Of a stretch of 64,000 bases of DNA, positions 7,201 to 55,100 are shown in pieces. The DNA is taken from the NCBI GenBank assembly GCA_900088475.1, contig FLMG01002354.1, positions 31,208-95,207 of the forward strand, read 5' to 3'. Numbering within the stretch: the first letter of the stretch is position 1; each line of letters begins with the position of its first letter. The DNA comes from Hyphochytrium catenoides (lineage: Eukaryota > Protista > Hyphochytriomycota). Under the pieces are notes generated by a model. The model was not told the DNA's origin, made no database searches, and saw nothing but the letters and a program-made list of their open reading frames with translations. Both the position numbers and the translations under genes were made by a program.

Positions 7201-10104
7201 TGTGAGTTCTCTCTCTTCCCTTTTGATCATGATGGAAGATGAAGAGAACGAGAGCTTTAGAACGAGCTATTGCGCTGACGCGCAAGAAAGGTCCAAGAGA
7301 AGGCGGAAAGAGTTATATCAAGGCTCTTTGGTTGTCCTCTTTGTCCTTAAGTATTGTCAGGCCGCAGGACTGATAGGCGTTTTAAAGCTGCCTCCACAAA
7401 CAGGATCGAAGGGGATTGTGGCCTATGATCTCTTTTCTTTGCCTGTCAATCTCCTTCTTCGGCGCCTTCGTTCTCCTCTCCTTGAGAAAAACAGATTCTC
7501 ATGTCTAGAGGAACATATTTTCAAGTTAGCTGCAGAAACGTGTCCGTCTCTTTTCCAGGATTTTGAGTCCATTATTAGCTGTGGTGTCACACCTGCGACG
7601 ACTTCTTCGAAGAGAATAGCAGCTGGCACTCTCTTGGAGGTTATCGTCCAGAGTAATTCCAATAGCGATTGGAAAGAGAAAGTGACGAGAGTTTTCTCTC
7701 TCACTACAACCTCCGTTTCCTCACGCGATCGGACGGCTAGGATTCTGGTGTTGAAGGAAGCAGTCAATGCGCCATTACTCCGGGCAAACCAAGTACTGGA
7801 AATTGCGCTCGAATTTCTGTCAGATGCTCTTGAAGTGGATAGAGAGGAGGAGCTGTGCGGCCTGGCTGAGGCAATACAAATGCTTTGGAAGCGGGTCATT
7901 CCTTTGCATCCCTCGCCCTCCGTTTTGAGACTAAGGTTGGCAAGTGCTCTATGTCAATTGCCGTTCGAGAAGGATAAAACCTTCAGAGAAGTTGTTATGG
8001 TAAGTAAGGCTCAAGAAAGCCCGGCGGTCAGCGGATAAGGGGAAAGCAGGGAGTCATCAGAGCGTGCGCGATTGGTAGTTAGAGGCTAGAGGCATCGACG
8101 AAGAAAGGTGTGGAACGCTTTTTTAGCAAGAGAGAGAGAGAGAGGGACAAGTTGCTTATTTTGGCCTATTACGTCCCCAGTGTCTGCTTTGAGAGCGGGA
8201 GATCAAAGATTCTTCAAGTTAGATGAAACAGAACCAACACGAAGACAGAACATTTTGACATAAACTGAGGACGGAGGAGAGGGAGGATTAAGCTAACATC
8301 GTTTTCTTCGACCTAATATCGCGGCATTATGTAGGACCCTAGCCAACTCCTCAGCTGCTCCCATGTGGTGCTTCGCAATCCGAGACTATTGGAGCTACTG
8401 CTCTCGGTGCTGCATTTCTTCATTTTTGAGGCAAGACACTGGCACCAGGGATTGGTAAGGGAGCAGAGGTAGAAGAAGGGCAAGGACAAGACAGATTGCC
8501 TTTGATGTGCCTCTTAGTACTTCATTCGATAATTGCCCGAGACTTCCATAGTGTCAACTAATTTACACTGCATATGTAGGCAAGAGCCCTGGAATCGTCA
8601 ACTGATAAGGCTGCTGAGGGTGGGCAGGGCAATAATGCGGATCCGGCAGAGGCTTCGCCGGCATCTTCACTTCCATTGCTCCAGGAAAGTCTGATCATCC
8701 ATGGTCTCATAGAGCTCTGTGAAGGGCCAAGAAGGACGGAGACCGACCCGACAGAAGAACTACAGAAGGGTGAGGAGTTACTGTCGGAGGAGCTGCGGTT
8801 AGAAGCCATTCGGGATGTCGTTTGCAGATTCTTGGGACGGCTCTTTGTAGAGAACCCAACCGTGATGAAGCTAGTCCACTTCCAGGTAGGAGTTGTCGCT
8901 CCTCTGTCTAGGGCTTACCAAGCCTTCCGTGGGGTTCAATCTGATCACAACATTTTGCGACTTCTGGTCTGCCCTCCTCTTCTCCAAGTTTGCTGTTAGA
9001 GCTCATTTGTATACTTTAGTTTGTACGTGTGCTGAGAATCGCTCTTTCTAATCTCAGGGTTATGACCGAAGCCTGCTACCAGTCTTGCTGCGGGGAATCC
9101 CTACCTTGCAGAGGCTTGGCCCTTTGCTTTCTGACTTCCTTCTTGGTCCCTCCGAACTAGAGTAGGTCCTCGTTATCTGGGAACACCTCCCTTTGGCCCA
9201 CACAGAAATGTCCTGTTGCGGGTTTCCTGCTCTTCTCATGGCCTAGCATGAGCATATGCACTATATCGCAATCCTGATCTGACTCTATTTTTGTAAGCAG
9301 CCTTATGGTTGTGACCGCTCCACGACTCACGCGGATTCAGTGTATCCTGATCATCGCTGACAAAGCCTTTCTTTTCTTTTGTGACTGTTCGCCTCTTTGA
9401 AAAAGCTTGGTCAGCAGTAGCTTTGTCACTAGACCTGCCTTAGCTCTGGTCTCTCTCTTTCATCTTTCACCTTGTCCTTACACTTGTGGGACAGGAATCT
9501 CAGGTGACCCTCGTCTGCTCCTTCATTCGTCTATGTAGGGAGGAACAACTTCTCTTTCAGTTGACCTTCATTGCGGAGTTTGTCACCAGATATCCGGAGG
9601 CTACGTTCAAGAAGCACGCAAAGGCTGTTATTCGGATTCTGCGAACTTATTGCACCGAAGTTCTCAGGTATAGCCGATGCTGAAAGGGGCTAGTGAAGGG
9701 GTTACGCCGAGAGAACTAAAAGGCGGGCCAAGGGATCGTCCAATGATATGTCTGACTGGGACAATGCCAGTCATATTCAATATCGGAAGATGACATCTGG
9801 AGAGGAAATGAGGGCCAACGACTAGAGAGCTGAAAGCGCTGACCCATACTCCTGCTCCTCTTTTCTTAGTGGCGATTGTCGCTCCACATCCAGACCGCGG
9901 TACTTCCTGTTGCAGTCCCTGCCATCTCTCCCCCCTATTTGTCACGCCTACCCTGACTTGAGCACAATTACTGTGGAGCTACTCCTAGAATTTAAACCGG
10001 GAGGTATGTTTGAGGCGCTGGTGCCAGCATCTGAAGAGGATTCGCTACAGAGAAAGGTTTTAGAGACCTTTAAAGCCCTTGTCCAGGGGCAGTTCATGCT
10101 GTAG
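4275..10104 (+). CDS. INTS2: Integrator complex subunit 2, multi-exon
   Basis: N-terminal EPFLPYLVLL...HPQ|VNKVQEYL. Middle IFVKNK|VDCSGYILRQL..S.P.HPLVPELL. C-terminal VCRFLGRLFVENPTVMKLVHFQ|GYDRSLLPVLLRGIPTL and RYFLLQSLPSLPPICHAYP parallel INTS2 (KLVHFQGY...GIPS; R..F.P.LPSL...C.AFP). Confidence 0.85.
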
Positions 10105-10502
10105 GATGGGTGGAGGGCCAAGGAACAGAAGCCGACACCGTCTGGCTGTAAGCTATCCCTCGCCAACCGTATCCCGAAGCGCTTCAACTGCCGAGATTCG
10201 CAGCTCCAGCAAACCTAGAAGCCCTTCTATGGGGGGGGTGTGAGTGTTCACGCCCAAAGGCCTTATCAAGCACTGGTAAACATCAGTGAAGGCTTTTCTT
10301 CTCTATCGCTGCCACGGTTTGACTCTTTTGGGGTGGAAGCGTTCGTAACCCCAGGAGATATTAAAACGGTTTAGACCGCAGGAGATTCCAGGGCTACCAA
10401 GAGTAGAATAACCGCTGCAGGCCTCTAATTTATTCATTTTAGATCATCCTTGTGTCCTTTGAGAGGCCTCGTGCACGGCACTAAGCTCTAGCTAACCAAA
10501 AG

Positions 10503-13500
10503 CTAGTGACCCTGTTCCTTCTTCTTACCGCTTCCTGACACGATGTCGTCAATACGAAGGAGCATGCACGATGCCTAGTTTGAGAAAAGAGAGCAACAAA
10601 TGTCAGCCACTTCGACGCTCTTAAGTGTAGTCTCCCGGTTAATCGGTCCTTTCAATCTATCGAGTAGCACTTCTCTTAAGTTTACCTCGATAGCGGTCTT
10701 GATAGTCTGGCTTTTAACGACAAAAGGCTCCCATATGCCCAGGTCATTCATATCAGCTAGCACACCCTTGGTTCCATCGATGCCCCACGTCGGATTGGCG
10801 CCGTTTGCATGCTTGGCCTGCAATTAAGGAGGCAAATGACAAGACGAGTGGATGTAACGAGAAGGCTAGTGAGAAACTCAGAGCTATTAAGTTGCTGGAA
10901 GACCACAGGCAACAAGAGGGAGATAACGCCGATCACGTCATGGAGATATGCAAATCATGTTATGGAGATATGAGGAAGATTTTCTACATACAAGGACGTT
11001 ATAGAGTAAGAGAGAATAGAACAGGAAAGCATGGTGTCAGATATCCGGAAGGTATAACTTGGCAAAAGGAAAGGCTGAGAGATTTAAGCAAGAGACTCCT
11101 CTGAAGGTCAGTCCTACCCTGAGCTGTGTCATAATCCGCACAGTATCAGCCCCACAGTTCTCACACAATGTCCTTGGAATGACTTCCAGAGCCTAGAGAA
11201 TGCGTGTCAGTTTAAATGAGAGTCACTTATGATGCTTTCGGTTGGCCCCATGTTTATGAAGGCCTGCTCTTCGTCTATACGTGTGCTTCTGTGTCTATCC
11301 AACTGTTGGTATATGTGCTGCAAAGTGAAGTACCACTCCCTCTCTGTTTTTTCTTATCACGCCTTGTGTCGAATACGCTCCTTTCATGATTGTTGAGCGT
11401 TCTTCAGCTTCACCCCCTGTCGTACCTGTCCAATAGCCCGGAATGGCCATTGCTCCACGCCTTCAACGCTCTGCGCTGCCGTCGAGATGGCAGCAGCAAC
11501 GCTCATTTCGGTGGCCCCACCTAGAGCGAAAGAGAGCAACGAAGACTTAGCACCCTAGACCGTGGCCAGGTGACCAAGTTCGCAAAAGTAGACAATCTAC
11601 TAGCCAGGTCTGAATGATAGAGAGTATATTGAGAACAATAGAGCGACAATTAAAGGACATCGCCTACCGCGGGCATGCGAGTAACAAATGACTATGGAGG
11701 TTAAAGCCAACTATGACCTAACGCGCCAAGCTGCCCATGAAAGTATAGTGGGAGGATGGAAGAGGTAACAGAGAATGGCAAGGAATGCTGCCACGGTAGC
11801 GGCACGGGACTCACCGCCAGGTAGGAGCAAAGGCTCGAAGACCACGTTCCTCGCCACCAGCATGGCATCTTGCAGGTTTCTCTCAACTTCATTAAGGACG
11901 TCCTTGCTCCCTCCTCTGAGGAGGATGGTGCATGCCTTGGGGTCCTTGCACTTCTCAAAGAAAGCAAAATATTCGTCTCCAATCTTACGAACCTGTACAC
12001 AAGACCAGAATAAGGGAGAGACTAAGGTCCAAGAGACGAGAAGGACATAAATTCTGTAAGGATAGGAGAAATCTCGGGAAGAGATTACTGCAGGTTCTGA
12101 GAGATTTAGGCCAGCAGCGCAACTACTTTTTCTATAAAAGTTATAAGAGAGCGAGAGGTCACCCCGACAATACATACCTCGAAGAGGCCACATCCAGTCC
12201 CTATATCTGACTCCTGAATCTCATCCGTTCTGTTGACGATAGTGGCGCCAACAGCACGAGCAACACGGTTGTTATCAGTCTTACGTAGACGGCGAAGGGC
12301 AGTGATATTGGCCTTAACGAAATAATGCTGAGCCAGGTCTAGACATAAAGAGCAGAACGTTAGCCAACAAGGAACTAGAAACAAGGTCTATGAGCTTGAC
12401 CTCACCTGAAATGCCTTTCTCTGTGATGACAATATCAGGCTTGAAAGCAACGATCTCCGCGCACATCTTCTCAATGTACTCTTCCTCCATTCGTAGAATA
12501 GTGTTGAAGTCCTCTTCCTTCGTCATCTCTAGGTTGGCCTGGGTCTCTGTCTTCTTATACTCCAGAGGGCAATCTAGGAGCAGTACACGAGGGTTCTCAA
12601 TACGCCTACATAAGAGAAAGAAAGAGCAGAGGTCAGTCCCTCTGCTTCACACTATATCTTTTGGCATTCCGTTCCGCGCTCTTTTAGTCCGTAGCATCTC
12701 CAAGCTTTCCTTTGGCCCTACCCACGTTGTTATCAGGCCAACCTTCGGGCATTGAGCTCTTTGCTTACCGTCTCATCTTAGGATGGGTAATATCCTTGTT
12801 GAACATGACGCCATCGATCACACGGCAATCTTCCAATTCGCCGCCTGGGATCTGACGGATCGCAGAATGGAAAGTGGTAAGAGGCCAAGGATATCTACAT
12901 CTGCTGAACGGAGAGGGCACCTTTTCAACTTTCGCATAGCGCTTGATGTCCACCTCCTTGCGTCCCCCCTGGAGGTCTCTGGCTACCCTGCGGACTGCCT
13001 GGAATGCGAGGTCGCACATCAGGTTGCCCCATCTGGAGCTAAACTTTGTGCCGATCGAAGAGGAAATGATTTTGCGCATCTGCTCTGGGTCCTCAATGTC
13101 TACAGGCTTGGCCAGCTTTTTCATCACCTTCAGTAGCAAGAGGCGGAAGGTTAGAAGCGGAGGAAGGGGTGGAGATCAAGAGAGAACTGAGTTGGTCTAG
13201 TTCTAGAATTCCCCTTAGAGGTCCATGACTAAGCACGCACCTCTATCGCATGCTGCAACGCCTTGTTATATCCTCGGACAATGACTGTGGGATGCATATT
13301 TCTATGCAATAATGGCTCAGCGAGCACCAGAAGCTCGCCAGCTGCGTAGTTGTACACAATGGTCAGAATTTCCGCTAATGAATCATCATCAAAGCCGCCA
13401 CTTACCAAGAATGATCACAGATGTGGTCCCGTCTCCCACTTCCTCGTCCTGGGCCCTACTCAGCTCTATCATGCTCTTTCCCGCTGGATGTGCAATATCA

Positions 13501-17198: not shown

Positions 17199-19063
17199 TT
17201 ATACCTCAGGCCAAGCTGCCCGTTCTGCCTCAGGAAATGAGGCGATGTGCTTGAGCCATCGCGCAATGTTAGGGGTCTTCTTGGGGTCAACACCACCCTG
17301 GGACACGTGCTTGAAGCGTGCATTGTCAGCAGCCGTGGGCGTGTACCCCCCAACGTAGCTCTGAGCTCCAAGAACTTTTTCAAGCTCCTTTAGTCCATCC
17401 TGACATACTGCAGGCATCTCAGCATTCTTAGCAGGAGAAGCCACAGACTTCTTAGCAGGTGACACAGGCGCGGGCTGAGCTCCTGGCGCCACCTTCTTCT
17501 TTGGAGATTGGGGAGTTACTTGCAGAGGAGCTGAGACCTGCTTTTTTGCCTCCGTTGCTGGCTTCTTTGCATCAATGGCCTTCTCTTTCTTACCCCCAGA
17601 AGGTTTCCCTTTCTGCTCTCCACCCTTCTCACCTTGGGGTTTAGCGCCCTTCTTGACCTCAGCCTTTGCCATCTTCTTCGCTTGCACGTTCTCCTTTGCC
17701 TCCCGAACGAACGGGAAGAACGTGACCCCTCCACAAAACGGCACAAGTACCTCAGGGACTAGGACGCCATCCTTGGTCTGATAGTTCTCCAGAATGCAAC
17801 AGATCGTACGTGTCGTGGCACAGAGAGTGGCGTTCAGCATGTGAACGTACTTCTTCTCTGTTTGGCCCATCTTCTTCATTCCGCATCGAATTTCCATTGC
17901 GCGGGATTGGTAATCTGTGCAGTTGGAACAGGAGACAAGCTCGCGGTATTCCTGATATGCAGGAAACCAAGCCTCAAGATCAAGCTTCTTCGCTGCAGCG
18001 TTGTTGAGGTCTCCAGACACGATGTTCACTACGTGGTAAGGAAGGTTGAGGCTTTGATAGAACTCTTCTGCTGTTTCAAGAAGCTCCTTCTGAGATTCAA
18101 CAGATTTCTCTGGTTCCGTGATCATGAATTGCTCGACCTTTTCAAACTGGTGGACGCGGAATATTCCCCAGGTATCCTTTCCATGCTTTCCTGCTTCTTT
18201 CCTGAAGCATGTAGAGTACCCAGCATAACGCTTGGGCAGTTCGCTTTCATTAAGCCACTCATTCTTATGGAACCCGCAGATGGGCTGCTCTGAGGTTGCG
18301 ATGAGGTACTTCTCGTCTTCTCCGGTCACCTTGTACAGCGCTTCATCGAACTCCTCGAGCTGTGCCACTCCTGCCATGACATCCTTATTCATGAAGAAAG
18401 GAGGCTGCATTACCGTGTACTGCTTCTTTGTAAGAAAGGCGATGCCGTAGTTGATCAATGCCTGATTCAGTAGCACTCCTGGTCCCGTAAGAAAGTAGGC
18501 GCGATGGCCAGCAATCGCCGCTCCCTTATCAGGCTCGTAACCTCCAATTCGCCAAAGGATGTCGTGGTGGTGAAGCAGGTCGGCCTCTATTCTTCTCTCT
18601 CCCCATAGCTTCTCTACCCTGTTGTCCTTCTCATCTGTGGAGACAGGTACATCGTCATCCACAATATTTCCTATCTTGCTAAGCTCGACTTCAAGCATGG
18701 TCTTCTTTGCAGTCTCATCTACTTTCAGCTGCGGTTCTGACACAGCGAGGGCTTTCCGTTTTGTGATCAATTCTGAGGCGTCCTCTTTGGCCTTCATTTT
18801 GTCCTTGATCTGACTGTTGAGGGCATTCATCTCCTTCTGACATTTTTCCAGTGCCACAACTGCTGCGCGCCAATCCTACCAGTCAATAGCTGTTATGATT
18901 GAAGCCATTATCATCGTAATAACGAGGACACACGGGTTACCTGATCTAACTGGATGACCTTGTCGACAAGCTCTACAGATGCGTTTCTCTTCTTTTGTGA
19001 CTCTCGTACCAGGTCGGGATTCCCTCCGCGTTCAGGCCGTAGGAGATTAATGTCGATAGGCAT
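17199..19063 (-). CDS. SARS1: Cytosolic seryl-tRNA synthetase with C-terminal eEF1B-beta-like GST domain; 2 exons (intron 18876-18940)
   Basis: MPIDINLLR..RGGNPDLVRESQKKR, YLIATSEQP, motif 2 CFRKEAG..GKDTWGIFRVHQFEKVEQF, ELVSCSNCTDYQSR, motif 3 HMLNATLCATTRTICCILENYQ. Confidence 0.97.
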
Positions 19064-21451: not shown

Positions 21452-24400
21452 TTACTCTTCCTCTTCGTCTGATAGAAAGTCATCCTGAAAGGTGCTAGTG
21501 CTACCATCATCCCTCACTCGTCTGCTATGCTCCTTCCCTTCTTGGCTTATTTCTCTCGTTTGGTCATCATGAGGCTCCTTCCCCTCCTCTCCTCCTCTAT
21601 CCTTCAACGCTTCCTTCTCCACAACTACCATCTCTTTCTCTCTCGCGTTGTTATCAGAAACTGCCTGGGTCTTCTCTCCTTGCTTCACCTCTGTGTTTGC
21701 AGATGATTGGAGCGCCGCAATATCTTGGCTTCTTTGGACATCACCAGAGAAAGCTCCGTTGGTTCCGCCAATCTCCGAGTTTGCTATCTGTGGGGGTTCC
21801 ATTGATGTCGGAGAATTACCATCTATCTTATGAACCTTGCTGTCACTCTTCCCTTCATTTTCAGGCCCATGGGGGCTTACGGTCGGCAGTACTTCAAGAG
21901 TGACATCTCCTGTCGCGGTCTTGTCCACTTTATCCAGCTTCTCTTTCTCAACTTTGCCTGCTTTCGCGGCAGTGGACTCGGACTCTGCTCGCCTTGTTGT
22001 CGTATGCTGTTCCACATTTCCCCTTCCCTCTTTCTCTATGTGGTCTGGTCCAAGTGTTTGCTTCTTATCAAGCTCTATCTTACTGTTGCTTTGCTCTCTG
22101 CCTTGAATATCAGCAGAGGGGCCCTCTGGTATGGTTCTTTCTTCTCTGACCATGGAACTCTCGCTTGAGGGTGCAGACGTTCTCGATTCCTGGACACTTA
22201 CCTTGATTACGTCCTTCTTTTCGGCCTCGTTATCTTTTTCTTTCGTCTGAATAACTTCGCGGGCACTTGTCCTTAGTATGATATCCGAGGTGGAGCCCTC
22301 AGCGGATGGAACTGTTGGGGTTGGCATGACTTTGCTCTGGAGAACTTGTGGCGGAGCAGACTCATCCCCTTCATTGGCCATGAGGGATAACCCATCGCTC
22401 CCTTCCGCTCTGTCTTCTTCATCAACCTGTTCTTTTTCTGCTTTATTGAATCCTTCATGTTGGTCTTTCCCCCTTATCTTTTCCTCCTCTGCACCTTCCT
22501 CCATTTCCTCCATATCTTCCTCCCCTTCCTCCGTATCTTCCTCCCCTTCCTCCGTATCTTCCTCCCCTTCCTCCTTATCATCCTCCTCTTCCTCGGTACT
22601 TTCCTCATCCTCCTCCTGACTGTCCTGGTTTCTACTCGTCTCTTCACCTTCCTCGCCTCTTCCTCTGCCGCTTTCATCCTCCTCGTCGTCTTTCTTTAAT
22701 AATAGCGTCGTTGCTTTGCCTCTCGTATGGTCCTGCCTCTCATTCGTCTGGGGTACGCTAGGGGTCTGGCCGGGAGAAAGAGGAAGCTGTCCCTTCTGAG
22801 AAATGCTTAAATTCTGGTTCGGTTTCTTGCCATCAAACACTTCTCTCTTCTCTTGATCCGCAGCAGCTCTTTTGGACCCCTTGACTGGGCTATCAACCTG
22901 GTCCCTCATCTCCCTTACTGTTCTTTTCGTGGGGTCTGGCTTTGTGCCCATGGTCTCTTTAAGAGAGACTAAATCTACATCTTCATCTCGCCCTGTCCCT
23001 CTCGTCTTTGCTTGAGCTTTGACAACCTTGACAGAAACTTCCTTTGTGTTTGAACTTGGGCCTAGCGCGGAGACGGCTTCCTTCATCTGGGTGCTTGGTA
23101 CTTCTTTATTATCCTTGTGCTGGTCTTGCTCGTCGTCGTCGTCGTTCCCATCTTCCTGCTCTGCTTCCTCTTCTTCATCATCATCTTCTTCTTCGCTGTC
23201 CTCTTCCTCTTCGCCTTGCTCTTCCTCGTTGTCGTCACTATTTTGGCTGTCGACTCCATCCTCGTCCTCTCCGCTACCCTCATCTGGTTCATCATCAGTT
23301 GCCTCCTTCCCGCCAAGAGACGCACCCTCCGCGTCATCATTTTCCTCTTCTTCTTCCTCATGCTTTGGCCGAGACGGCTTCTTATCGATACTCTTCTCCA
23401 GCCGCAGTCCCGCCTTATCTCCTGATGGTTTCTCGTTTTGCTGCGCTTTTGCCTTTGGCCCAGACATCTTTCCTCCAACTTCCTGCTGTTCACCACGTTC
23501 CACTTTCCTGTCCACTATCTTCTGCGGTTCTTGGATAGTCTTTACACCTTCCTTCGCTTTTATCTTCTCGTCCATAGTCTTTCCTGTTTTCTCTTGGTCT
23601 CCTCTTAAGGCTTCAGCGTGATGAGCAGCCACATTTTTCTTTTTTGTCCTCTCTGAAAGGCTTTGACCAGAGGTTTTGGTGCCAGAAGAGCCTTGATTTC
23701 CAACAGCTACTTCTTCCAGCTCATCCGCTTCTTCGCTGACATCGACGTTGAGGTTCTCCTCCTGCTCCTCTTCTTCTCCATCTTCCTTCTCAGCTTCTCC
23801 TTCTTCTCCTTGTTCTTCTTCCTTTCTCCCATTTGTTCCTTCTTCTAAGTCTTCTCCCTCGCTTTCCTCTGCTGCTTCTGTATCACCTTCCTCTTCTCCA
23901 TCTTCCGTCGATGTCTCCGATCCGGCGTGATCTCTTTGGTCTTCTTGGTAACCCATTGCGGGCTCCTCAGCATCGTTCTTCTTTATCAGCTTCTTGCCTC
24001 CTCCTTCAGACGCTTTAAGGCCAATTAACGGGTTGCCTTTCTCTTTGTCGCTGATACTGCTTCCAACCTTCGAGACTCTGTCGTTGAGACCGGAACTGCA
24101 CTCCTGCTTAGATGCTGCTCGTTGGCTTTTGCTTCCATCTCCCGCTTGCCTTTGACTTAAATCTTTGTCCACTTGGTAGTCAGCTTCTTCTTCTCTTCCC
24201 GGTTCCCTTTTGGTGGGTAACGGTTGGCCAGACTTCGCTGGTGAACTTAGACGGACTGCAGAGGAGTTGGGAGGTGTTGACTTGCCATCTTTCTTGTTTA
24301 AGGGCCGTGGCGCCTGGGAGAGGACTCTAGGAGCCGAAGAGGCAGTCGTGTTCGGCTCACTATTGACCTCTTTCTCGTTAACAAGAGGGTTCTTAGAGAT

Positions 24401-27400
24401 TGGAGGACCTTTTAGCTCCTTGGCTCCTGCCGAGGATGCCTCCACCGCGAGCTTCTGGGCAGCGGGGGCCGAGGGCTCTGACGTTGTTGCACCCAGTTCT
24501 CTGTCCTTCTTTCCTTTCCAGTGCTTCAACTCATCTTGGCCATCTGTCCTGCAAGAGGAAAGTATCGACTCTTCTTCGATATTCTTCTTCTTTCCGCCCT
24601 CGGAGGTCTGAGAAGAGGAGGAAGAAGGAGCAAGAGCTTTAGCTATCCCTTTATCAGGCGGGGTGCTACCCTTAGCAGTTACATCTGGCCCAGGATGTCG
24701 CTGTTTTGAGCCACTGCGAACAGGGAGAGAAGCCTTTTCGAACGAAGCTGTCGCGTTGCTTTGTCCTTGTGGATTAGTTCCTTCCACTACCTCTACGTCC
24801 TTCTTCTCTTCCTTTGCCATAGAAGGAGAGGCATTCTTTCCTTTTTTTGGAGAGAGAACTGAGGTGATTGCTTTCTTCGCAGAATCGAGAAAAGCGCTTA
24901 TTCTAGAAGGGGAAGGTGGTCGTGTAGCAGAGACATTGGCAGCAGCGGAGGCGGACGAGGAGACAGGGGAAGCTCCCGTGTCCAAGTGGAGCTCTTTCTT
25001 CCTGGGGGCCTTGCCATCTCTGCCTCCTTCCTTCTCTCTACCTGTACCCTGTACTGGTCTTGTGTCATTTCTGCCCCTTCTTTCTGCCTCTTTCACAGGT
25101 GTGCTCTTTCTCTCCGTGTTCTTCTGCTTTGTTACCTTCAGTTTGTCCTCCTGGACTCGCCGCTTACCCTCTTCTTTCTTGTTTATAGCCTTCCCAGGTG
25201 ACCTTCTTAAGCTGTCAGACTTAACCTCCCTAGCAGATGAAGAGGAGCGATCACAAGGAACAGACCCTTCATCACCTTTTTGCTGAAGCATAAGGACTCG
25301 CTCTTCTCTGGTATCCTGTGGCCTCTCTTTTACTTTCTTTCCTGTTTTCGTCTGACTGTCTGTTTCTTCCCTCTCTGGAAATCCTGTCTTTCTCCCTGCA
25401 GCTTCTATCTTCTTCTCCCCATTTTGGAAGCAACCAAGAAGATGCCCGAACGAGATAAGGATCCGGGTGATCTCTCCGTGTCTTTTATGGACTTCATCCT
25501 GCAGAAGTTGTAGCTGCTTCTCTTGGCCTAGAAGAAAGACCCAGATAGCGTTAAGTAAGACCTTTTTGGTCCCCCTGTTTCATCTCTCCATGGGCTGACC
25601 CTCTATCCCTTGACCTCACATCTTTCCTCGCCGTACTCGTTCTTTCTTCGCATTGCCAAGAAAGCCACGGCTTTCCCTATATGCGTCTCGCCTTCCCCCT
25701 GAATTGTTTTTGCGCCCTCTTCTCTCTGTCTTCGCTCGCTTAGCGCTCTTTTGGTCATGGCCCTCGACTTGTTCCCGACCTGTCGGCACCGTCCTTCTCT
25801 CATTCCCACCATACTCCGTTTCATTTGTTACTTACTGAAGGAGAGAACAGAAGACAGGACGCTGGAGCTCAGCAACGGATCTCTAAGGAGCTCTGCCAGA
25901 AGAGAGAAATGACCTTCTTTCTCGGGACTTCCTCTTTCTTCCACTATTTTCTGACCCTTCACAGTGACAAGCACTCTTTCATGGATTTGATCCAAGTCCA
26001 CAGCCTTGAGGAGCACTAGAGAGTGCAGTATCACCCTTTCTCTCACTTTGGAAGCGTCAGGTGATGAGCCAGAAGAGCCCAGAGCGAGCGCACAGAGAAG
26101 TTGAGGAAGACTGAGCGATGAGAATGAAAGCCTAAAATTGAGGGAGAGTTAGTGATATGAAAACCCAGAGCGATGGAAAAGTCGGCGCCAAAAGGACATA
26201 GATATAACCAGAAGAATAAGTCACTGAGGGAGCAAACAAGAAGACCAAAGTAGAAAGAGAGCCAGAGCTGGAGACATGGAGAGAAACACAGTGAGAGAAA
26301 GAGAAAGAGAGGGAACCGGAGAGTTAACATACGAGCCATGCTGCCGGAATAGAATGGATCATATACTGGTCCAAAGGAGAGGAGAAAGACGCGAAAGAGA
26401 GACAATTGCACTCAGAGGTTCCCTTACCGCACGTTCAAGTTCCAGTTTAGCACAGAACTCATGATCTGCAGCCCTAAAACAAGCTTCTGCGTTGTCAGGA
26501 CATCAGTGGAAGAGAAGGTGGGGCTTGATAGGACGTGTTTCTGAAATAGAGAGGAGAGAAAAGAGACTATATCGTTCTGCTCTCTCTGGCACTCCTCAGG
26601 CTGCTTAAATGAAGGGGCGGAACGGACCACTCTGACCAACGGCAGAGGATCAAAGTCATGCCCTTCACAGAGAAGGTTCCAGAGGAAGTAGACCTGTGCC
26701 CTCTTTGACACCTGCCGTAGGACCTTAACAAAAGAAAGGGCGGAAGATGTAAGGCGACACGATATGGAAGAGAGGGCGCGAAGAGGAAGAGGTTCACTAA
26801 AGAGTGAAGCATCCTAGTCCTGCCGTCAACGTTGTCAAGGTTAGAACAAATAGTCCAGACATATACGTTGTGCTCTACTAACTCCTCCACACACTCTGCG
26901 ACGCGATTCCTCCGTCCTTCTCTCCCCCACTTCTCTATCTTTTTACCTTGCATATCCTCTCTCCGATATTAAGAATGGTTTGCGTTGCCCTAGTATTGTG
27001 CTGGACATCGGTGACGGAGAGCTGAAGAGCGTCCTGTCCGAGAAGGTCAGCCAAGGGCTGACGCTCCAGAGCGACCCAAAGGGTAAGTGAGGAACAAAGG
27101 TGCGAGAGCCAGCTGAACTGCCTGTTAAGTAACAATAAACGAGGGAAGAATTTATGTCAGTGGGAGAAGCGATAAGAAGTGTAAAGACAGAGACTAACAT
27201 CTGTTTTTAGAAGAAGGAGGGCATAGGGAGATCTTAAAGAGATATATGGTGAGCACATGGGCGAAAGTAAGAGATACCGGGAGTCTAGGGCTTGCTCTGC
27301 CTCTTCTTTCTCCGGTCCTGAGAACTGATCAAGTTCTGGGTGGGCCTGACGAATTAGCTCTCGGATGTCCGCTGCCAGCACATTGAGTGCCTGGTAGAAA

Positions 27401-30500: not shown

Positions 30501-31534
30501 GATGACCCTAAGACAGTGAACAGCCCTGCCCAAGCCGCATGACTCGTGCCCGCGATCACTGGGAATAGTTCTCCTGGGTCCACGAAACATCCTATAAGCT
30601 TGGATACGCCGATCCTTGTACACCCAGCTCGGCTAGAGGCTAGTATGGAGTATAAGGTTCTGTCAGGGAGGCACTTGGCCAGCCAACAAATTTCAAGCTC
30701 TAGTTCCGGTCCTAGGTAGCCTTACAATCCCCTTAGAGGTCTCTCCACATTCATCATCACTTTTGTGCGTGGGACAGTCTGCTCTCTCTTATCTGGCTTC
30801 ATCAATATCAATAAAGGTTTGTCATTAGTTCATGGCCATTCTGCGGATAAGGCCACATTATCCCTCTTTATAAGTTAATAACAAATTCTCTACCACCTCT
30901 TAAGCTGTCCTCTCACACCCTCTCGGTACGGATAAGAATATAAAGCTCTTGCAACGGCGCAGTACCTCCAAGCAGTCACCAGATAATATCCGAAGGAGCC
31001 AGCGAGGGCGAACTTGAAGAGATGATGATGATGAAGCAAGAGAGATAGAGAAGAGAGACAGAAGCTAATAGGTACAGGTTCACCTGGTTCGCGAGGTGGA
31101 AGTGCTGCTCGGTAATGAGAAGCTCGTTATCACTTCTTCGTGATGATCTAGACACCTTAACCCGCTAACGGCTACCAGTTTCTAGATGGGAGACGTTAGC
31201 GGCTCTCGGGTGGACCAAATGTTGTTGCTTGGACGGTCCGATGGACAGTTGCGTCGTTGCTTTTGAAGAGTCACGGATCATCCCTCCAACCCCAGTCTCA
31301 CGGCAGGAGCCGTAGTTGATAAGGAGAGCAAAGGACAAAGAAGAGGAGGCTTCGGATCGAGGCAGTCAAGCTGTCCGGACGCTCATTTGACAGCCATTTC
31401 ACCTCGTGGGGCTCACCATCAAGTGAGTCATTGCTTTCATATAACAGGTAGCTTGGCTCGCAATGCATCTGCCCTTAATCTTTAGCCGCGATTGGTCATC
31501 CTGGTAAGAGCGATAAAAGCTTCAGAGCTAGACG

Positions 31535-47568: not shown

Positions 47569-47777
47569 TCAGCCGAGCGGGTATATCACTGTCGGCTAGA
47601 GTTTCGTTAACTTCCCATAGTTGTGGCGTAGCGTGCGGTACATGCAGATGCTTGCCAGCCAGACACTGTCACTAGCAGTGTCACAGCTAATAGTCTGAAA
47701 CCTTTTTGGTTCTCAATGCATGCAACTACGTGACAGGCAGAGTGCTTGGGATGAACATCACGATACGGGTTAAATAG

Positions 47778-50700
47778 TTAGTTGATGGAGTTTGCATCGC
47801 TGCTACCCAGACGATCCTGACTCAGCGAAGCAGCGTTCTGGACTTCATAGGCTAGACCAGTTAATCTGACGCGATTAGCTTTCTTGCCAAGAGCCGCGTA
47901 CACAGCCTAACCAGGAGTTTGAGCTCGAAGTTAGCGTTTTCAATGACATAGGACAGATAACGTGAAGGGAAGCACACCTTCTTGGATCCAACCAAAATCA
48001 GCTGTTCCCTAGCTCTTGTGAACCCTGTGTAGAGTAGGCTTCGATCCAGCATGAAGAAATGGTTCATGAAGAGAGGAATGACCACCACAGGGAATTCACA
48101 GCCCTGACTTTTATGAATGGTCAGGGCATAAGCAAGCCCTAACTCTGGCATTTGTGGCAGTGTATACTGCGCTTCTTTCCATCTACCTCCCGTCCCCTCT
48201 TCAAAGTGGACTCTCAAGGTTGGGCGACGACGCTTATCCACCGCGACAATGGTACCAATGTCTCCATTGTAGGTACCTCGATCATAATTGTTGACCTTTT
48301 GCATTACTCTGTCACCTAAAGAAGAGAACATGATTAGTGGCTCTGTCGATCATTTCAATAAAGATAGCAGAGACCATTCAGAATGAGGAGAGAACAGGCG
48401 TACACAAGGTAGGAATTGCCAGAGGATCTCACCCAAACAGTAGAAACTATCCCCCATCATAACAGCAGCTTTTTCCTTGAAGTTTGGGTTAAGTATTCGC
48501 TGCAGCAGGCTGTTTAGGGAAGCAGTACCCATGTGCCCCTTCGTTAGAGGGGACAAGACCTGCACGTCCACTGCTGGATCATAGCCTAGCTTTTGAATGA
48601 ATCCGAGAAGCCCTCTTTGCTCGTCGCTCCCTGCCCTCGGTTCACCAAAGAGTAACCTCTCAGCCTCCTCTGGGTCATGTGCTTCAAGCAAAAAGACGTT
48701 TCCATTTTCCGTACTGGATAACTCTTCAGGGTTGAAGGGATTAGGCAGAAGCTTCGGCTGGACTATAAAGCCCTCCGGACCTTCGACAACCTCTAGCCTC
48801 GTGTAGTGTTCGGGTGCTTTGCACTGATTTATGAGATGTGCGTTCATCACAATCTGGCTGTTCTCAGCCTGTCGCAGTATCTGCTGCAACCTTGTTGTGC
48901 TGAAGACTTGAGAAGCTATCAGGTCCCTCAACACAGCCCCAGGTCCGATGGACGGAAGTTGATCAACGTCTCCTACGAATACGACCTACGCAGCGGCAGG
49001 TTAACCATAGACCACTCAAAGAACGCAAGCTAGTAAAGAGCATAGACTTACCTGAGATCCTGCCTGAATAGCTTTCACGAGAGCCGAGGCCAGGTAAAGG
49101 TCAACCATGGACATCTTGAGTGCAGATTGTTAGTTCGCGTGTCCCGGATGTTCATACAAGAGATGGACCAAGAGACCGACAATGATAGCCTACCTCATCG
49201 ACTACGATGGCATCACCATCAAGCATCTTCCACCCACCGAGACTATTCGAGTAAACTCTGCCAAATCCCAGGGCCCTATGAATTGTGGACGCGTATATAT
49301 ACTCTCCAGACGACCCATTCTGCTGGTAGTCTAAGAAAGGCTTACTTGTGAGTCGCGACGGCATGATATACGCTTCTGGTATTACCGACCTTTGCCACTG
49401 TTCACAACCTGTTCCAGCTTCTTTGCCGCCCGCGCTGTGGGGCAAATAAGCACTACTCTTTTGCCTAGCCTTCTCCAAATCTCAACTATCGTTTTCACTG
49501 TGAACGTCTTTCCCACTCCAGGTCCCCCTGGTAGGAGACGGAGTCAGCTCGAAGCAGAAAAGTACGCGTTCTGGAGCCTGCATGTTTACGGACCTGTTAT
49601 GATAGATACCCCATTGGTTAACGATGCCGTAACGGCATGCTTCTGGTCCTCTGTGAGGCCATTCTGACTGGTTAGGAGACGTAACTCCTGGGTATATAGA
49701 GAAAGTGCATATTAGGTCATTTCTCCTTTTGACCGAGAGGCAGCAAGACCGTTGTTATCAAACCTGCTCGACCGAGGCTCCTTCAGCACTCAAGACCTGA
49801 GACTTATATAGCTTGTCGAGTTTTAACAATGCCGTGGCGATGCCCTTCTCCATGTTGGCTATATGTGCTGTGGCTAGTAAGGTTATTCCTTCCCCCGAGT
49901 TTTCTTTCAAGGACGGGCTACTGACTATCAGGCCCTCCTCCACCATCTCTGCCATCTGGGTGGAAATGACCTTTTCTAGGCTCTCAGAGCCTTCCAAAGA
50001 CTTGTGGAAGCATTAGCTTCTACGCGCTGGGAAAGAACAGACTTCTCAGCCGTACCTCAACTCCCAACAGCACCTTACACTTGGCAACTACTTCGCCTTC
50101 CGGCATCCTGGTGTCACCCGAATCTAGTAGCCCTTCCCGCAGTGCATAAGTTATTGCTGCCTGGACCTAAGGAAATTGATCATGTGATAGGGATAAAGGT
50201 CAGCTAAAGAAGAGGCAGGCTCTGGATATTAGACCAGTATGCCCACGAGCAGAGACCGACAACAACCCAGGAGGCCGGATGGGAGAGTTTTCAATCAGAA
50301 GATGCCCATATTCTTCGTTCTCTAACTCGAAGGCATGCAGTGGACTTGTAACCAGAAGGCTACGCTGTTACCCGCAATTCGGGGCTCCACTCAGCTTCCA
50401 ACTCCGCCGCTAGCCGGTCCACGGTTTGAAAGGTGACACCGTCAAATTCCTGGATCAGCCTGTAAGGGTTTGCCAGTATTAGCCCTGGAGCTCGATCTCC
50501 ATACTCCGCCAGAATGTTCTGGATAATGGTGTTTGATAACCCCAACGACTGCATGAGCATGACAATCTCTCTCGAAGGCGCCTGAAGATCAACCAAGAAG
50601 TTCACTTTCGGTCCTGCCTCTTCGAAAGTCTTTCTATTAGGCCATGCCTACCAGTTCCTTCCATTGAGATACAAAGCGTGAGAGTGTTTCCTTTCCAATG

Positions 50701-51446
50701 CCCTGGACTTTGAGGAGCTCCTTTGGATCTCCTTCCAAAGTCTCATACACTCTATCTCCAAATCTGTCCACTATCCGCCGGGCCAACACGGGGCCAACGC
50801 CTTTAATTACGCTATTTTGTTGCCAAAGAAGGAACGGAGAAGAGTTGTTGGTGCGACAGCTCAACCGCAATGGCTACATTCTAACAGAAGTGAAGCCGCC
50901 GGGCAGGACACGTACGCTGTGATATACTGTGCAACGGCCGCAGAAGATGGGGTGGAGCCGAACAGCCTACGACTCTTGAGGTGGAATTGTTCACCGAAAG
51001 TCGGGGAGTTCCTGCTATAACCCCAGACTTCAAGGTCCTCCCCTTCCTTCGCTGCAGCTAGTAGCCCTTAGAGCCAGGAAGCGTAACTATGAGGCGTGTA
51101 AGTGATATTTCAAGAGAGGAGCTCATACCATCCACGGCAACAACTCGAATCTGCTTTCCCACAGAATGCGTCACGTCAGTGGTACTCAAGACAGTGGCTG
51201 AAGCTACCGTGAAGCTGCCTTCGTCCTTTCGAACAAGAATCTATCATAGTCAGGTTATAGTTAAGCCGTGTTTCTAGAGGCAGCACCAATGTCTGCGGAG
51301 CCTCTTACTGTGTCAATTCGGGCAGTAAGTCCGATGGTCTCGGACTTTGAAGATCCCGTAGTGTCATTCATCCAGCGACATAGAATCGCTCTTATGTTCG
51401 GCGGGCGCTGCCGCTTCAGTGTTCTTCTGACGCCGATAAGCAACAT
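47778..51446 (-). CDS. recD2: RecD2-type ATP-dependent SF1B DNA helicase with N-terminal organelle-targeting-like peptide; at least 12 exons
   Basis: Hh[18 protein letters not shown]...[15 protein letters not shown]...GVTF.TVD, Walker A ITG|GPGVGKT, PTARAAK, STIHRAL, Walker B VVDE|[55 protein letters not shown]...[31 protein letters not shown], terminal RLTGL. Confidence 0.95.
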
Positions 51447-52130
51447 CTGGATAGAGGCTATCGAATGGAGTAAGACTAGCCCCAACTTCCAAATCCCTTC
51501 ATGCGATTGTGACGATCACTCTCAGCTCATTACCCCTTCCAGCAGACAAGAGCTAACGGCTCTCACGGGCACGCTACCAGTGACATTCCACACGATGCCA
51601 CTCCACACGATGCCTAGCGCCTAAGAGTCAAAGAGCTGCAAAATGGAGATCCTCTCTCATCCCAATGTCCTGACAAGTGGTAGAACTCGAGTTTGAACTG
51701 AGCAGACACAGCCTCGCCAAGATTAAGATTGGGAAGCGAGGCTGCTATGAGGAGGAAGATTCTGACTAGCCTCTAACGACTATCTGGGCATTCTGATGGG
51801 GCATTGGTGTTGGATGGCGGGAGACAGAGATTGTGACAGAGCGATGGCGATGCTGAGTCTTCAGAAAGACAGAGGCGCTGTGCCAGTGTGAGGCCTGTGA
51901 TCGCGTCGTTTCAGGCATCAGGAGATGCCGCTGGAGTCTCTGAACCCAGCTTTGGCCGTCATTCTTGCCTGTAAGCGCGCTGACAAGACGAAACTGGGGC
52001 CGGAAGAGCAGCAGAAGGGACCACCCGACTCTGAATCTTCATGAAACACTTAATGCTAGGATGAGTGCCCTTTGGATGTAAGGAGCTTGCGGCTGATATC
52101 CTTTAAAGGACTAGCGGTGAACTGTGAACT

Positions 52131-55100
52131 ATGGCGGGAAAATTTGAGATAGTCTCTCTCGTGAGCAGCGGCAACTTGCGGCTACTAGAAGGGTTTCGTA
52201 CAGAACAGGTGCTCGAAGTGCTATCACAGCGAGTGCAGGAGGCGGAAGTGCAGCAAGAAGGGACAACAAGGGCTGTTTCCATCGGCCGGCTTTCAATTCT
52301 GCCAGGAGTCTCTGATGTTAAAGTGTACAAGGGCATCCTGAGATGGATAACTGGACTCCTTGTATCTTCAACGGAGGCAAGTGATGGCCGACGAGGGAAG
52401 GAGACTGAGGCAGGCGGCAAGCGGAAGAGAGAGGATGAGGGGAAATCACCCAAGAAACGCCGAAGACCTAGGCAGGGGACATCTGAAGAAGAAGAAGGGC
52501 AGAACAAGCACGACCCAGTAAGCAGATCTATCCTGAGAGAGAAAGGGCTGTGGAGACTGTTTCAGACCGTCATCACAAGGTTGTATGAAAGTGCGGATGC
52601 AAGGGTCGCTGAGAATGAAAGTGAGAAACGCTTGACAGTGCTTGCAAGTGGAGAAGGCGTAATCCAGACCTCTGTCGGGTCCTCCATCCTCTCCGCCATT
52701 ACTGAGGCTTTGAAGAGTCAGGATGAAGAGATCAGACTCTATGGTCTAAACCTTTTTCGGTCCCTCTTCGGCGGTTCATTGTTGGAGCTCACGCCACGCG
52801 AGCACTCCAAGGAACCAATGAAGGCGAAGACAGGAGTCCGAAGATATCACTTTGTGCCCCAATGTACTATCTACAGGCCTACCCTGGACATTATGCATGC
52901 TTTCGCTCAATCTCTTCTGTCTGCTTACCTTTTATCTCCTTCGACTCTTCAACCAAGCCCCCTGGAACTGACAGTTCTCCACAATGTGCTCAGCGTGTAT
53001 CTGGTCTTACAGAGAGATCAAACAAACGATAAGAAACAATTCGCGGCAGTCTCTCAGCTCCTTCTGCCTTTCGCTTGTCTTCGTCGGTGGCTCATCAGCG
53101 GTACTGCAACTTGGAGTAGCGGTGATGGGGAGCAATCGACCCACGGCGCAATGGAATCCTTAGAAGGCTTGGGATTCAATTATGCTCCTGGCCTAGTGCG
53201 GGATATATTGGGACTGTTGGATAGTATCACGTACGAAGGGCTCTTCTCTGACAAAGTGATACAGGGCTTTCAGGCCACTTACAAGAGGTACGAGAGCTCC
53301 ATACGCTTTCTAAACCAACCTGAGGATGGTCCGGGGCAGGAGGATGAACCCCAGGAACACGATGATGGGGCTGATGAAGGAAAGGAGAAGCAGGGGACCA
53401 AAGAAAACAAGCGAGGCATCAGGAAGAGCTTCACGAAATCCTTTCAAGCGGGATTTTTTGATTTCATCCAAGAGCAAGTTTCCTCTCTTAGCTTGCATTC
53501 CCCGCCACCTGATAGCTCTAAAAGCAACTTAGAGATGAGAGGACAGGTGGAGTCCCAAGTATTCAGACTCGACTCCTTCCTATGGTATCTCCCTCAGCTG
53601 GTTGAAGGCTTCTCTCGCTCTTATAAGAAGGGTCTCGATCGCCAGGCTGGAGTGGACTCCTACTTGGGTCTAAAGCAGGATAGATACAAGCAGAACGTCA
53701 TTGGTCAAGACTATATGTTCACATTTGAGCTATGTTCTCTCCTCAATGAGGAGCTTCGAAGGGTAAGCATACAGCTCTCTAGGTTGAAAACGCTACCTAA
53801 CGCTGAAGCAGCAAAGCAAGCTGAGGTTCTTGTGGATCTCTGCAAGAGCTACTTGAAGGGTATTGATGCTTTGGTGGCTGCACTTGGCCACTACTCTATC
53901 TACCACCCTGCCAAGGATAACACTGCTGGCCATCAGATTCACTCTTTTACCGGCCTCGCAGCAGACCTCATTCAGGAAACAAGTACCAGACAAAGGAGCG
54001 TACTTGTGCTCTCATCACCCTCCTCGACAGGACAGTGTTTATTCACTGAGGAGCTGTCGCTTCTTAAGAGTCTCGTCGGGATAGACCATCGGGTCCTGGA
54101 GTCTAACCAATCGCTTACAACAGTGTTTAAGATACTAGGCAAGGCGGAGATGGAGATAGGCTCTGACCCTACTTCGTCTGCCTTGGAATTCCTAGTATTC
54201 CTGGTGAAAACGTACTCCGATCTCCGTCAACTAGATTTCTTCCTCTCTACACTACTGGGAACCATAGAAGACGAAAATATTGACTTTTTACATAGATTAG
54301 TGAGCTCCACCAACTTCGAGAAGGAATTGACGAGGTCCTTCTTCCATTGCCCGCCAGGTAAGCTTCTAAGATGACGTATAATATCCTGCCAGATTCGGGC
54401 TGTGTGTACCTTTTTTAACACATATACTTTGTGTGCTTCTTTTCACTTGCATATGCATCCAACTCCTGGTGTTGCTGATATGGCTCCCAGGCGAATGATA
54501 TCTAAAATGCGTATGGGTCTTAGGACAATACAAGGCGCTTTGGGAGCTAATTGTGGCATCCTTGAGCAAAGCTCTATCGGGAATCGAAGCCGAGCAGCAT
54601 GGCGTAGAGGGTAGCGTCCGCTCTCTCTCCCTTCCAAGTGCCATCTTTGGTTGCTTTGTGTCTGGTCTATCCCTGCCACGTAGTCTCGCCCACTCCTTTC
54701 AAAAGCTTTCATCCGCTTTCCGAGCGGAGAAGTTGCAACCAATTCTAAACGCTATCGTGTTGTCTGAGGTATGCTCCTGGCGATGTATCGCTTCTCCCTC
54801 TAATATGAGATCCGTGCCATCTGATTGTGTTTTGCAGCCATCCTTCCGTGAAGCTCTGCCAGTCTGCTATTCTAGCTTGATGAAATGACGACTTTCTTTT
54901 GGATTTACAAGCTGTGATCCTATCCCTATTCCTTATCCAGCTGCTCCTTTTGACTAGAAAAACCTCCTCGCTATTCATTCTCCAGCTGCCTAAGAAGAAA
55001 AGGGCTCGAAAGGCGAAACTTGCCCTGGTAGGAGAGCTGTTCAAGTTGGTTTTTTGGCTTCAGGAGCTACTGTTCAAGGCCTCTTTGACCCCTGTTGGGG

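Follow-up and report, generated by a model that had tools for sequence, protein, structure and literature searches.

A predicted mitochondrial RecD2-type helicase encoded by an intron-rich nuclear gene of the stramenopile Hyphochytrium catenoides

In this study, we analysed a 64,000-nt stretch of the Hyphochytrium catenoides genome (contig FLMG01002354.1, forward-strand positions 31,208 to 95,207; hereafter the window, in which all positions below are counted) to characterise a gene on its reverse strand, at 47778-51446, that encodes a DNA helicase of the RecD2 family. We conclude that this is an intact nuclear stramenopile gene for a RecD2 helicase that is probably mitochondrial, and that the protein belongs to a small clade specific to eukaryotes. 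What is new here is the domain of life of the host, the predicted presequence, a set of signature changes in the helicase core and the heavy intron load; the enzyme family itself is well known.

The gene runs from an ATG at 51446 to a TAA stop ending at 47778, so that the limits of the interval are exactly the start and stop of the gene. Its coding sequence of 2571 nt is spread over 14 exons (Table 1) and specifies 856 residues with zero internal stops, and all 13 introns, which range in length from 55 to 205 nt, are of the GT-AG type. Intron 8 (49593-49528, phase 1) cuts the Gly codon where IITG meets GPGVGKT in the Walker A motif, and intron 10 (49193-49115, phase 0) separates VVDE from MSMVD in Walker B. 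When the exons are joined, 12 of the 13 splice junctions align colinearly and without gaps to a consensus built from 60 bacterial RecD2 proteins. The sole uncertain splice is that between exons 9 and 10, where an alternative in-frame donor/acceptor pair is present; since with the alternative junction (KKLEQ/QNGSS) the protein would lose residues to which bacterial as well as eukaryotic homologues align, we consider it less likely and prefer the model given here. A first-pass annotation, made from the letters of the stretch, had described at least 12 exons, introns splitting both Walker motifs, a C-terminal RxTxL motif and a full RecD2 layout. All four descriptions are borne out by the model, in which the OB fold (its OB_YrrC score just below cut-off), the helix-hairpin-helix (HhH) motifs, HHH_RecD2, the superfamily 1B (SF1B) core, the SH3 2B domain and RLTGL follow one another in order.

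Judged by its sequence, the gene encodes a true RecD2/YrrC-type SF1B DNA helicase of bacterial ancestry with intact catalytic motifs. Domain and family scores were taken on exon pieces. Pieces scored above the Pfam cut-offs for HHH_5, HHH_RecD2, AAA_19/AAA_30, SH3_13 and UvrD_C_2 (Table 1). A 59-residue exon-3 piece reached 23.3 bits on OB_YrrC (PF23139; cut-off 27, E = 6e-5), and the N-terminal OB region is colinear with bacterial N-termini in the alignment. Among the NCBIfam models, each informative piece scored highest on TIGR01448 (RecD2), well over RecD and TraA, and zero exon pieces matched the PIF1 domain PF05970 at E <= 0.01. The best match in the Protein Data Bank (PDB) was Deinococcus radiodurans RecD2 (3e1s), followed by Escherichia coli RecD and then by Bacteroides Pif1. 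With phmmer, the spliced protein matched bacterial RecD2 proteins of ~740 residues from end to end (E 1e-116 to 1e-117; identity 33-35%), and 140 of the 177 columns with at least 90% conservation in bacteria are retained, including the Lys of Walker A, the DE of Walker B, DQLPS, RQ, HKSQG.E and TR. SF1B motifs I, Ia, II, III, IV, V and VI are all present, motif Ia in the form CPTARAA, a variant of APTGRAA. The profiles, the PDB match and the trees, which place the protein among RecD2 sequences, all favour RecD2, and not the affinity to Pif1 or HELB that the first-pass annotation had named as the alternative.

Phylogenetic analysis with bacterial and eukaryotic homologues, which had likewise been proposed at the outset, groups the protein in a RecD2 clade with P0416 (Cafeteria KAA0159522.1) and with the metagenomic proteins P0022, P0414, P0415, P0421 and P0422. 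The clade received a Shimodaira-Hasegawa-like approximate likelihood ratio (SH-aLRT) support of 97 in a tree of 55 rows, and an ultrafast bootstrap (UFBoot) support of 99 with an SH-aLRT support of 96 in a tree of 41 rows under the posterior mean site frequency model LG+C20 PMSF. Its members also have unusual residues in common. Motif Ia reads CPTARAA in all seven proteins, as opposed to APTGRAA in bacteria, and among 161 bacterial sequences neither the C nor the A state turns up once. In five of the seven (the H. catenoides protein and four of its six relatives), GKT is followed by F or Y, a state that is likewise absent from the 161 bacterial sequences. Between motif Ia and TIHR, every one of the seven has an insertion, of 14 residues in H. 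catenoides and ~20-60 in the relatives, which the bacterial sequences shown do not have, and six of the seven, H. catenoides included, begin with a basic, acid-poor extension. Together, these data support the existence of a real eukaryote-specific RecD2 subfamily, which this stramenopile shares with Cafeteria-type bicosoecids. The first-pass annotation had read the gene as laterally or endosymbiotically acquired; the bacterial ancestry stands, and the gene is no isolated acquisition of this lineage but belongs to a wider eukaryotic clade that includes Cafeteria.

The N-terminus suggests where the helicase may act. Similarity to the bacterial OB fold begins at residue 38, in exon 1, and the stretch ahead of the OB start is 38 residues long, where the bacterial median is 9. 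Within residues 1-25 there are seven K/R and no D/E, in keeping with the Arg-rich, acid-free N-terminus described earlier, and the sequence stays acid-free for 27 residues, whereas pooled bacterial N-termini, with 15% D/E, are acidic. Extensions of 23-62 residues that are K/R-rich and acid-poor occur in five of the six relatives; they are rich in Arg, Ser, Thr and Ala and have no obvious clusters of the nuclear localisation signal (NLS) type. The Cafeteria gene model has no extension of this kind. The hydrophobic moment of the H. catenoides N-terminus is 0.64 over 11 residues (residues 2-12) and 0.36 over 18 residues, where internal segments average 0.40. Cafeteria is not known to have a plastid, so that a targeting-type extension conserved in the clade points to mitochondria as the organelle left. 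Mitochondrial import is therefore the best reading of the extension, and one to which we give somewhat better than even chances. The presequence claim of the first-pass annotation survives in part: the basic, acid-free extension beyond the bacterial homologues is there, but its amphipathic moment is unremarkable.

Several of our observations weigh against a mitochondrial RecD2. With regard to the enzyme, the five best pieces together reach ~385 bits on TIGR01448, short of the whole-protein equivalog cut-off of 500, with the smaller exons unscored or matching no family; on this score the helicase is at best a divergent RecD2. In addition, motif Ia, which is altered in the protein, is a DNA-contacting motif. 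With regard to the clade, the eukaryotic branches are all long and compositionally biased, the terminal branch of the H. catenoides protein measuring 2.0-2.8 substitutions per site, so that the tree taken by itself could be misleading, and the sampling of bacteria is limited; a long-branch artefact is argued against by the rare residues that the clade shares. No RNA run is listed for the organism, and the DNA runs show no spliced joints. With regard to import, the 18-residue moment is no greater than that of internal segments, a Pro-Pro pair breaks the helix, the KRQR within TLKRQRPP fits the K-K/R-x-K/R pattern of nuclear localisation, and translation could instead begin at M26, 12 residues before the OB start, in which case the extension would be missing from the protein.

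The points about the N-terminus are those that would be expected of a functional helicase that resides in the nucleus or cytosol and takes on fork or repair tasks in the manner of HELB or Pif1. The basic stretch would then be a classical monopartite NLS, or translation would begin at M26 and leave an N-terminus resembling those of bacteria. We regard this as unlikely, since the basic stretch is found at the very beginning of the protein, in an acid-free run, and is itself flanked by hydrophobic residues, and since the acid-poor extensions of five of the six relatives have no obvious clusters of this type. Moreover, the bacterial-type DNA maintenance proteins of eukaryotes are usually organellar. 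Dual localisation, with a mitochondrial isoform translated from M1 and a nuclear or cytosolic one arising when leaky scanning reaches M26, appears less likely still. Two in-frame ATGs do lie 75 nt apart, neither of them with a purine at -3, and the second would yield the bacterial-like N-terminus, but the proposal is a purely structural one.

The helicase gene resides in the nuclear genome, is ameliorated and rich in introns, and evolves under purifying selection. It lies in the window together with eukaryotic genes for an HCO3 transporter, SerRS, INTS2 and SHQ1, and in GC content, GC content at third codon positions (GC3) and codon use it matches the neighbouring genes. Contigs from three DNA runs of one organism (2011 and 2017, years that agree with the sequencing described for H. 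catenoides) extend across the introns with a depth equal to that of the flanking DNA, and a soil-type metagenome contains near-identical pieces of the gene. The variants between the DNA runs comprise 10 synonymous, 5 nonsynonymous and 14 intronic changes, giving a ratio of nonsynonymous to synonymous polymorphism (pN/pS) of ~0.16 (Fisher p = 5e-4), and synonymous diversity is close to intronic diversity, with ~1.6% of synonymous and ~1.3% of intronic sites differing between the 2011 and 2017 runs over 47600-51700. The low pN/pS and the similarity of synonymous to intronic diversity support both the exon model and purifying selection. A remnant of some ancient transfer that is silent or in decay, be it an unexpressed gene or an incipient pseudogene, would agree with the lack of a listed RNA run, the long terminal branch and the change of 37 of the 177 strongly conserved bacterial positions, but we hold it to be very improbable, as the frame is open over 14 exons and 13 canonical introns with the catalytic motifs intact, selection is evident in the polymorphism, and some of the changed positions are common to the whole eukaryotic clade and hence conserved. 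The idea that the gene is a bacterial contaminant, arrived recently from bacteria or was carried in by a giant virus or mobile element is effectively refuted, for although the family is overwhelmingly bacterial by domain content and the Hyphochytrium paper reports giant-virus insertions, the 13 spliceosomal introns, the eukaryotic flanking genes, the flank-equal read depth and the ameliorated codon use uphold the earlier statement that the gene is not contamination, identity to the bacterial, metagenomic and viral sequences of GTDB genomes, JGI metagenomes and IMG/VR stays within 43% for exon 12 and 53% for exon 13, and the closest relatives are eukaryotic. As a separate observation on the interval 47600-51700, the differences between the DNA runs of 2011 and 2017 indicate two haplotypes or strains, and hence a heterozygous organism or culture.

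If the helicase is mitochondrial, as we favour, a simple model of its function can be drawn. The Arg-rich, acid-free extension of ~25-35 residues would act as a mitochondrial presequence, and the mature enzyme would move 5'→3' on single-stranded mitochondrial DNA (mtDNA) using ATP. Bacterial RecD2 is a 5'→3' helicase that accompanies SSB at replication forks and interacts with RecA, whose filaments it takes apart, and it assists in restarting replication (PMC10804225). Like its bacterial counterparts, the stramenopile enzyme may help forks past obstacles and strip recombinase filaments, or unwind recombination intermediates during mtDNA replication and repair. Because all of the motor motifs are intact, the same chemistry carried out on mtDNA would be the simplest reading.

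The extent of the family was assessed through several searches. An exhaustive HMMER search with exon 12 against 1.84 billion representatives had a best E of 5e-25, and the H. catenoides helicase itself was absent from that collection. The matches in GTDB, JGI and IMG/VR were scattered over many phyla, with viral sequences no nearer than bacterial ones, and single out no donor phylum. An ESM Atlas look-up of exon 12 returned only bacterial or unrecorded clusters, a cluster look-up of ten long matches gave zero eukaryotic labels, and a profile made of a bacterial scaffold and the window pieces was dominated by the scaffold and matched bacterial proteins throughout. A candidate of eukaryotic size, P0149 (825 residues), proved bacterial on checking. 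In a tree of labelled bacterial RecD2 proteins, the H. catenoides protein formed a long branch without a reliable sister; in a FastTree phylogeny of the exon-12 matches, it paired with P0022, whose contig is eukaryotic (PH/EF-hand kinase, COMM, RMD1-3, GIDE and PP2C). A search with P0022 added five proteins, including Cafeteria roenbergensis KAA0159522.1, annotated 'hypothetical protein'. Oomycete, diatom and brown-algal proteins were absent from the best 120 matches of the P0022 search, though such proteomes sit in the searched collection; this suggests a patchy distribution of RecD2 among stramenopiles, the best 120 matches not amounting to proof of absence. Literature searches found no paper on a eukaryotic or organellar RecD2, and in the public databases a homologue is known only as the unnamed Cafeteria protein.

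The genomic settings of the relatives are informative as to their hosts. Five relative loci were fetched (those of P0415 and P0421 were left out), and each shares some of RMD1-3, RrnaAD, Peptidase_S11 and PP2C; because these neighbours are shared, Cafeteria's own locus included, we take the relative contigs to be of bicosoecid type. Cafeteria and three metagenomic contigs (L243, L244, L245 and L246) have a conserved neighbourhood that runs (COMM_HN) - RMD1-3 - RrnaAD - RecD2 - Peptidase_S11 - PP2C. The Peptidase_S11 gene (D-Ala-D-Ala carboxypeptidase) that stands next to RecD2 in the Cafeteria-type loci is itself a bacterial-type gene. The 1626-residue model of KAA0159522.1 (Cafeteria roenbergensis VLTM01000052.1, 6001-13526) looks mis-spliced, in that homology of the Cafeteria RecD2 to P0414 spans 7106-9166 and 9612-10940, including DNA modelled as intron, and the model is without the motif II-IV region and has extra exons at both ends.

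These data can be joined into a history, which we put forward tentatively and at somewhat less than an even chance. In this scenario, a single bacterial RecD2 would have been acquired before the bicosoecids and pseudofungi split, near the base of the stramenopiles, and would have received a presequence for mitochondria along with a remodelled motif Ia (CPTARAA and the insertion); it would survive patchily as an unrecognised part of mtDNA replication and recombination, and may work with other bacterial-type factors. The distribution so far, a pseudofungus-like stramenopile and bicosoecids, poses the choice between an ancient gain followed by repeated loss and transfer from eukaryote to eukaryote. 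The 13 introns of the H. catenoides gene, set against the uninterrupted open reading frames (ORFs) of P0022, P0414 and P0422, offer a clear-cut example of how a gene that came from bacteria gained many introns.

Table 1. Exons of the H. catenoides RecD2 gene, in order of transcription, with their encoded residues and recognisable features.
Exon	Position in window	Strand	Residues	Features
1	51309-51446	-	1-46	Presequence-like residues 1-25 (51446-51372); second in-frame ATG (M26) at 51371
2	51129-51240	-	47-84	N-terminal OB fold, first half; 10-residue lineage-specific insertion
3	50916-51066	-	84-134	OB_YrrC core; PF23139 23.3 bits, slightly below cut-off
4	50652-50811	-	134-187	Two helix-hairpin-helix motifs; HHH_5 (PF14520) 34.6 bits, cut-off 27; TIGR01448 positions 84-134
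5	50372-50581	-	188-257	HHH_RecD2 domain (PF14490) 56.5 bits, cut-off 27
6	50056-50166	-	258-294	Helical linker
7	49764-50000	-	295-373	Variable linker preceding the helicase core
8	49594-49687	-	374-405	Ends IITG; followed by intron 8 (phase 1), which falls within the Walker A glycine codon
9	49390-49527	-	405-451	Walker A GPGVGKT; motif Ia CPTARAA (49444-49424), eukaryote-specific form
10	49194-49330	-	451-496	Remainder of the clade-specific insertion after motif Ia; TIHR; pin region; Walker B VVDE; 5' junction uncertain
11	49052-49114	-	497-517	MSMVD and the next helix
12	48433-48985	-	518-702	Motif IV RQ; 37-residue stretch (48811-48701), ~29 residues of it without counterpart in the bacterial consensus; 9-residue lineage-specific insertion
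13	47978-48315	-	702-814	SH3 2B domain, SH3_13 (PF18335) 46.1 bits, cut-off 41; UvrD_C_2 69.2 bits; motif V HKSQGCE; motif VI TRAR
14	47778-47906	-	815-856 and stop	C-terminal RLTGL, residues 828-832 (47867-47853)

Three further ORFs of the window deserve mention. Divergent from the helicase gene and ~685 nt upstream of it lies a single-exon ORF of 747 residues (52131-54374, plus strand) that has no Pfam match and contains the basic cluster KRKREDEGKSPKKRRRPRQG; it probably encodes a nuclear protein and shares a bidirectional promoter region with the helicase gene. An ORF of 1279 residues at 21452-25291 (minus strand), without a Pfam family, lies in DNA of extreme strand asymmetry (GC skew -0.31 and AT skew -0.51 at 22001-24000) and probably encodes a low-complexity charged protein. 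The SerRS ORF at 17199-18857 (minus strand) is a single exon of 552 residues whose nearest named relatives, oomycete enzymes of ~454 residues, cover only ~70% of it, from which we conclude that it has an extra C-terminal part. It is 67-71% similar to the oomycete proteins, followed by those of Nannochloropsis and brown algae, its own protein being absent from the searched collection; by this comparison, the host is placed as a stramenopile near, and outside, the sampled oomycetes. On the same grounds we rejected a fungal host, such as a chytrid or Mortierella, which CTAAC-like branch points had at first suggested.

DNA maintenance in eukaryotic organelles is usually explained by Pif1, Twinkle and PolI-like polymerases and, in some lineages, by RecA and RecG. 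If our interpretation is true, a nuclear-encoded mitochondrial RecD2 adds a bacterial helicase with fork-progression and anti-recombinase functions to this toolkit; it extends a family and introduces no new mechanism. Both Cafeteria and Hyphochytrium can be cultured, which makes the system testable, and the signature of the clade (CPTARAA, the insertion and the N-terminal extension) makes it easy to look for in other protists.

Among known systems, bacterial RecD2 (Bacillus subtilis YrrC/RecD2 and D. radiodurans RecD2; TIGR01448; PDB 3e1s/3gp8) is the closest counterpart. Its domain order of OB, HhH, HHH_RecD2, SF1B core with motifs I-VI, SH3 2B and R.T.L is also that of the H. catenoides protein, in which OB_YrrC scores just below cut-off, and the two are colinear over their full length with the catalytic residues kept. 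Unlike the bacterial genes, that of H. catenoides is nuclear and has 13 introns, and its product, at 33-35% identity, has a basic N-terminal extension of ~30 residues, CPTARAA in place of APTGRAA, and extra residues inserted behind both motif Ia and motif IV. The nearest relatives, Cafeteria FNF31_04761 (KAA0159522.1 / A0A5A8D221), P0022, P0414, P0415, P0421 and P0422, have the clade, CPTARAA and the site of the insertion in common with it. They are all uncharacterised, are longer (1079-1626 residues) with much larger insertions, and come from GC-rich, compact genomes; P0022, P0414 and P0422 are called as single uninterrupted ORFs, in contrast to the 13 introns seen here, and the synteny of RMD1-3, RrnaAD, Peptidase_S11 and PP2C that marks the relatives is absent around the H. 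catenoides gene.

The Pif1 family has the SF1B 5'→3' core and an SH3-like 2B domain in common with the protein, but is without the N-terminal module of OB and HHH_RecD2, and the Bacteroides Pif1 structures match at 3.6e-5 as against 1.3e-10 for RecD2. As Pif1 is the usual organellar SF1B helicase of eukaryotes, the roles of the two may overlap. E. coli RecD, the RecBCD subunit (TIGR01447), and the Ti-type TraA share the SF1B core and UvrD_C_2; their scores are steadily below those of RecD2 (74 vs 137 bits on exon 13), and they are without the RecD2 N-terminal domains. Literature searches found no report of RecD2 among the bacterial-type recombination proteins of organelles. The organellar RecA and RecG of plants and protists follow the same logic as that proposed here for RecD2, namely a bacterial enzyme that is encoded in the nucleus and has been fitted with a targeting extension.

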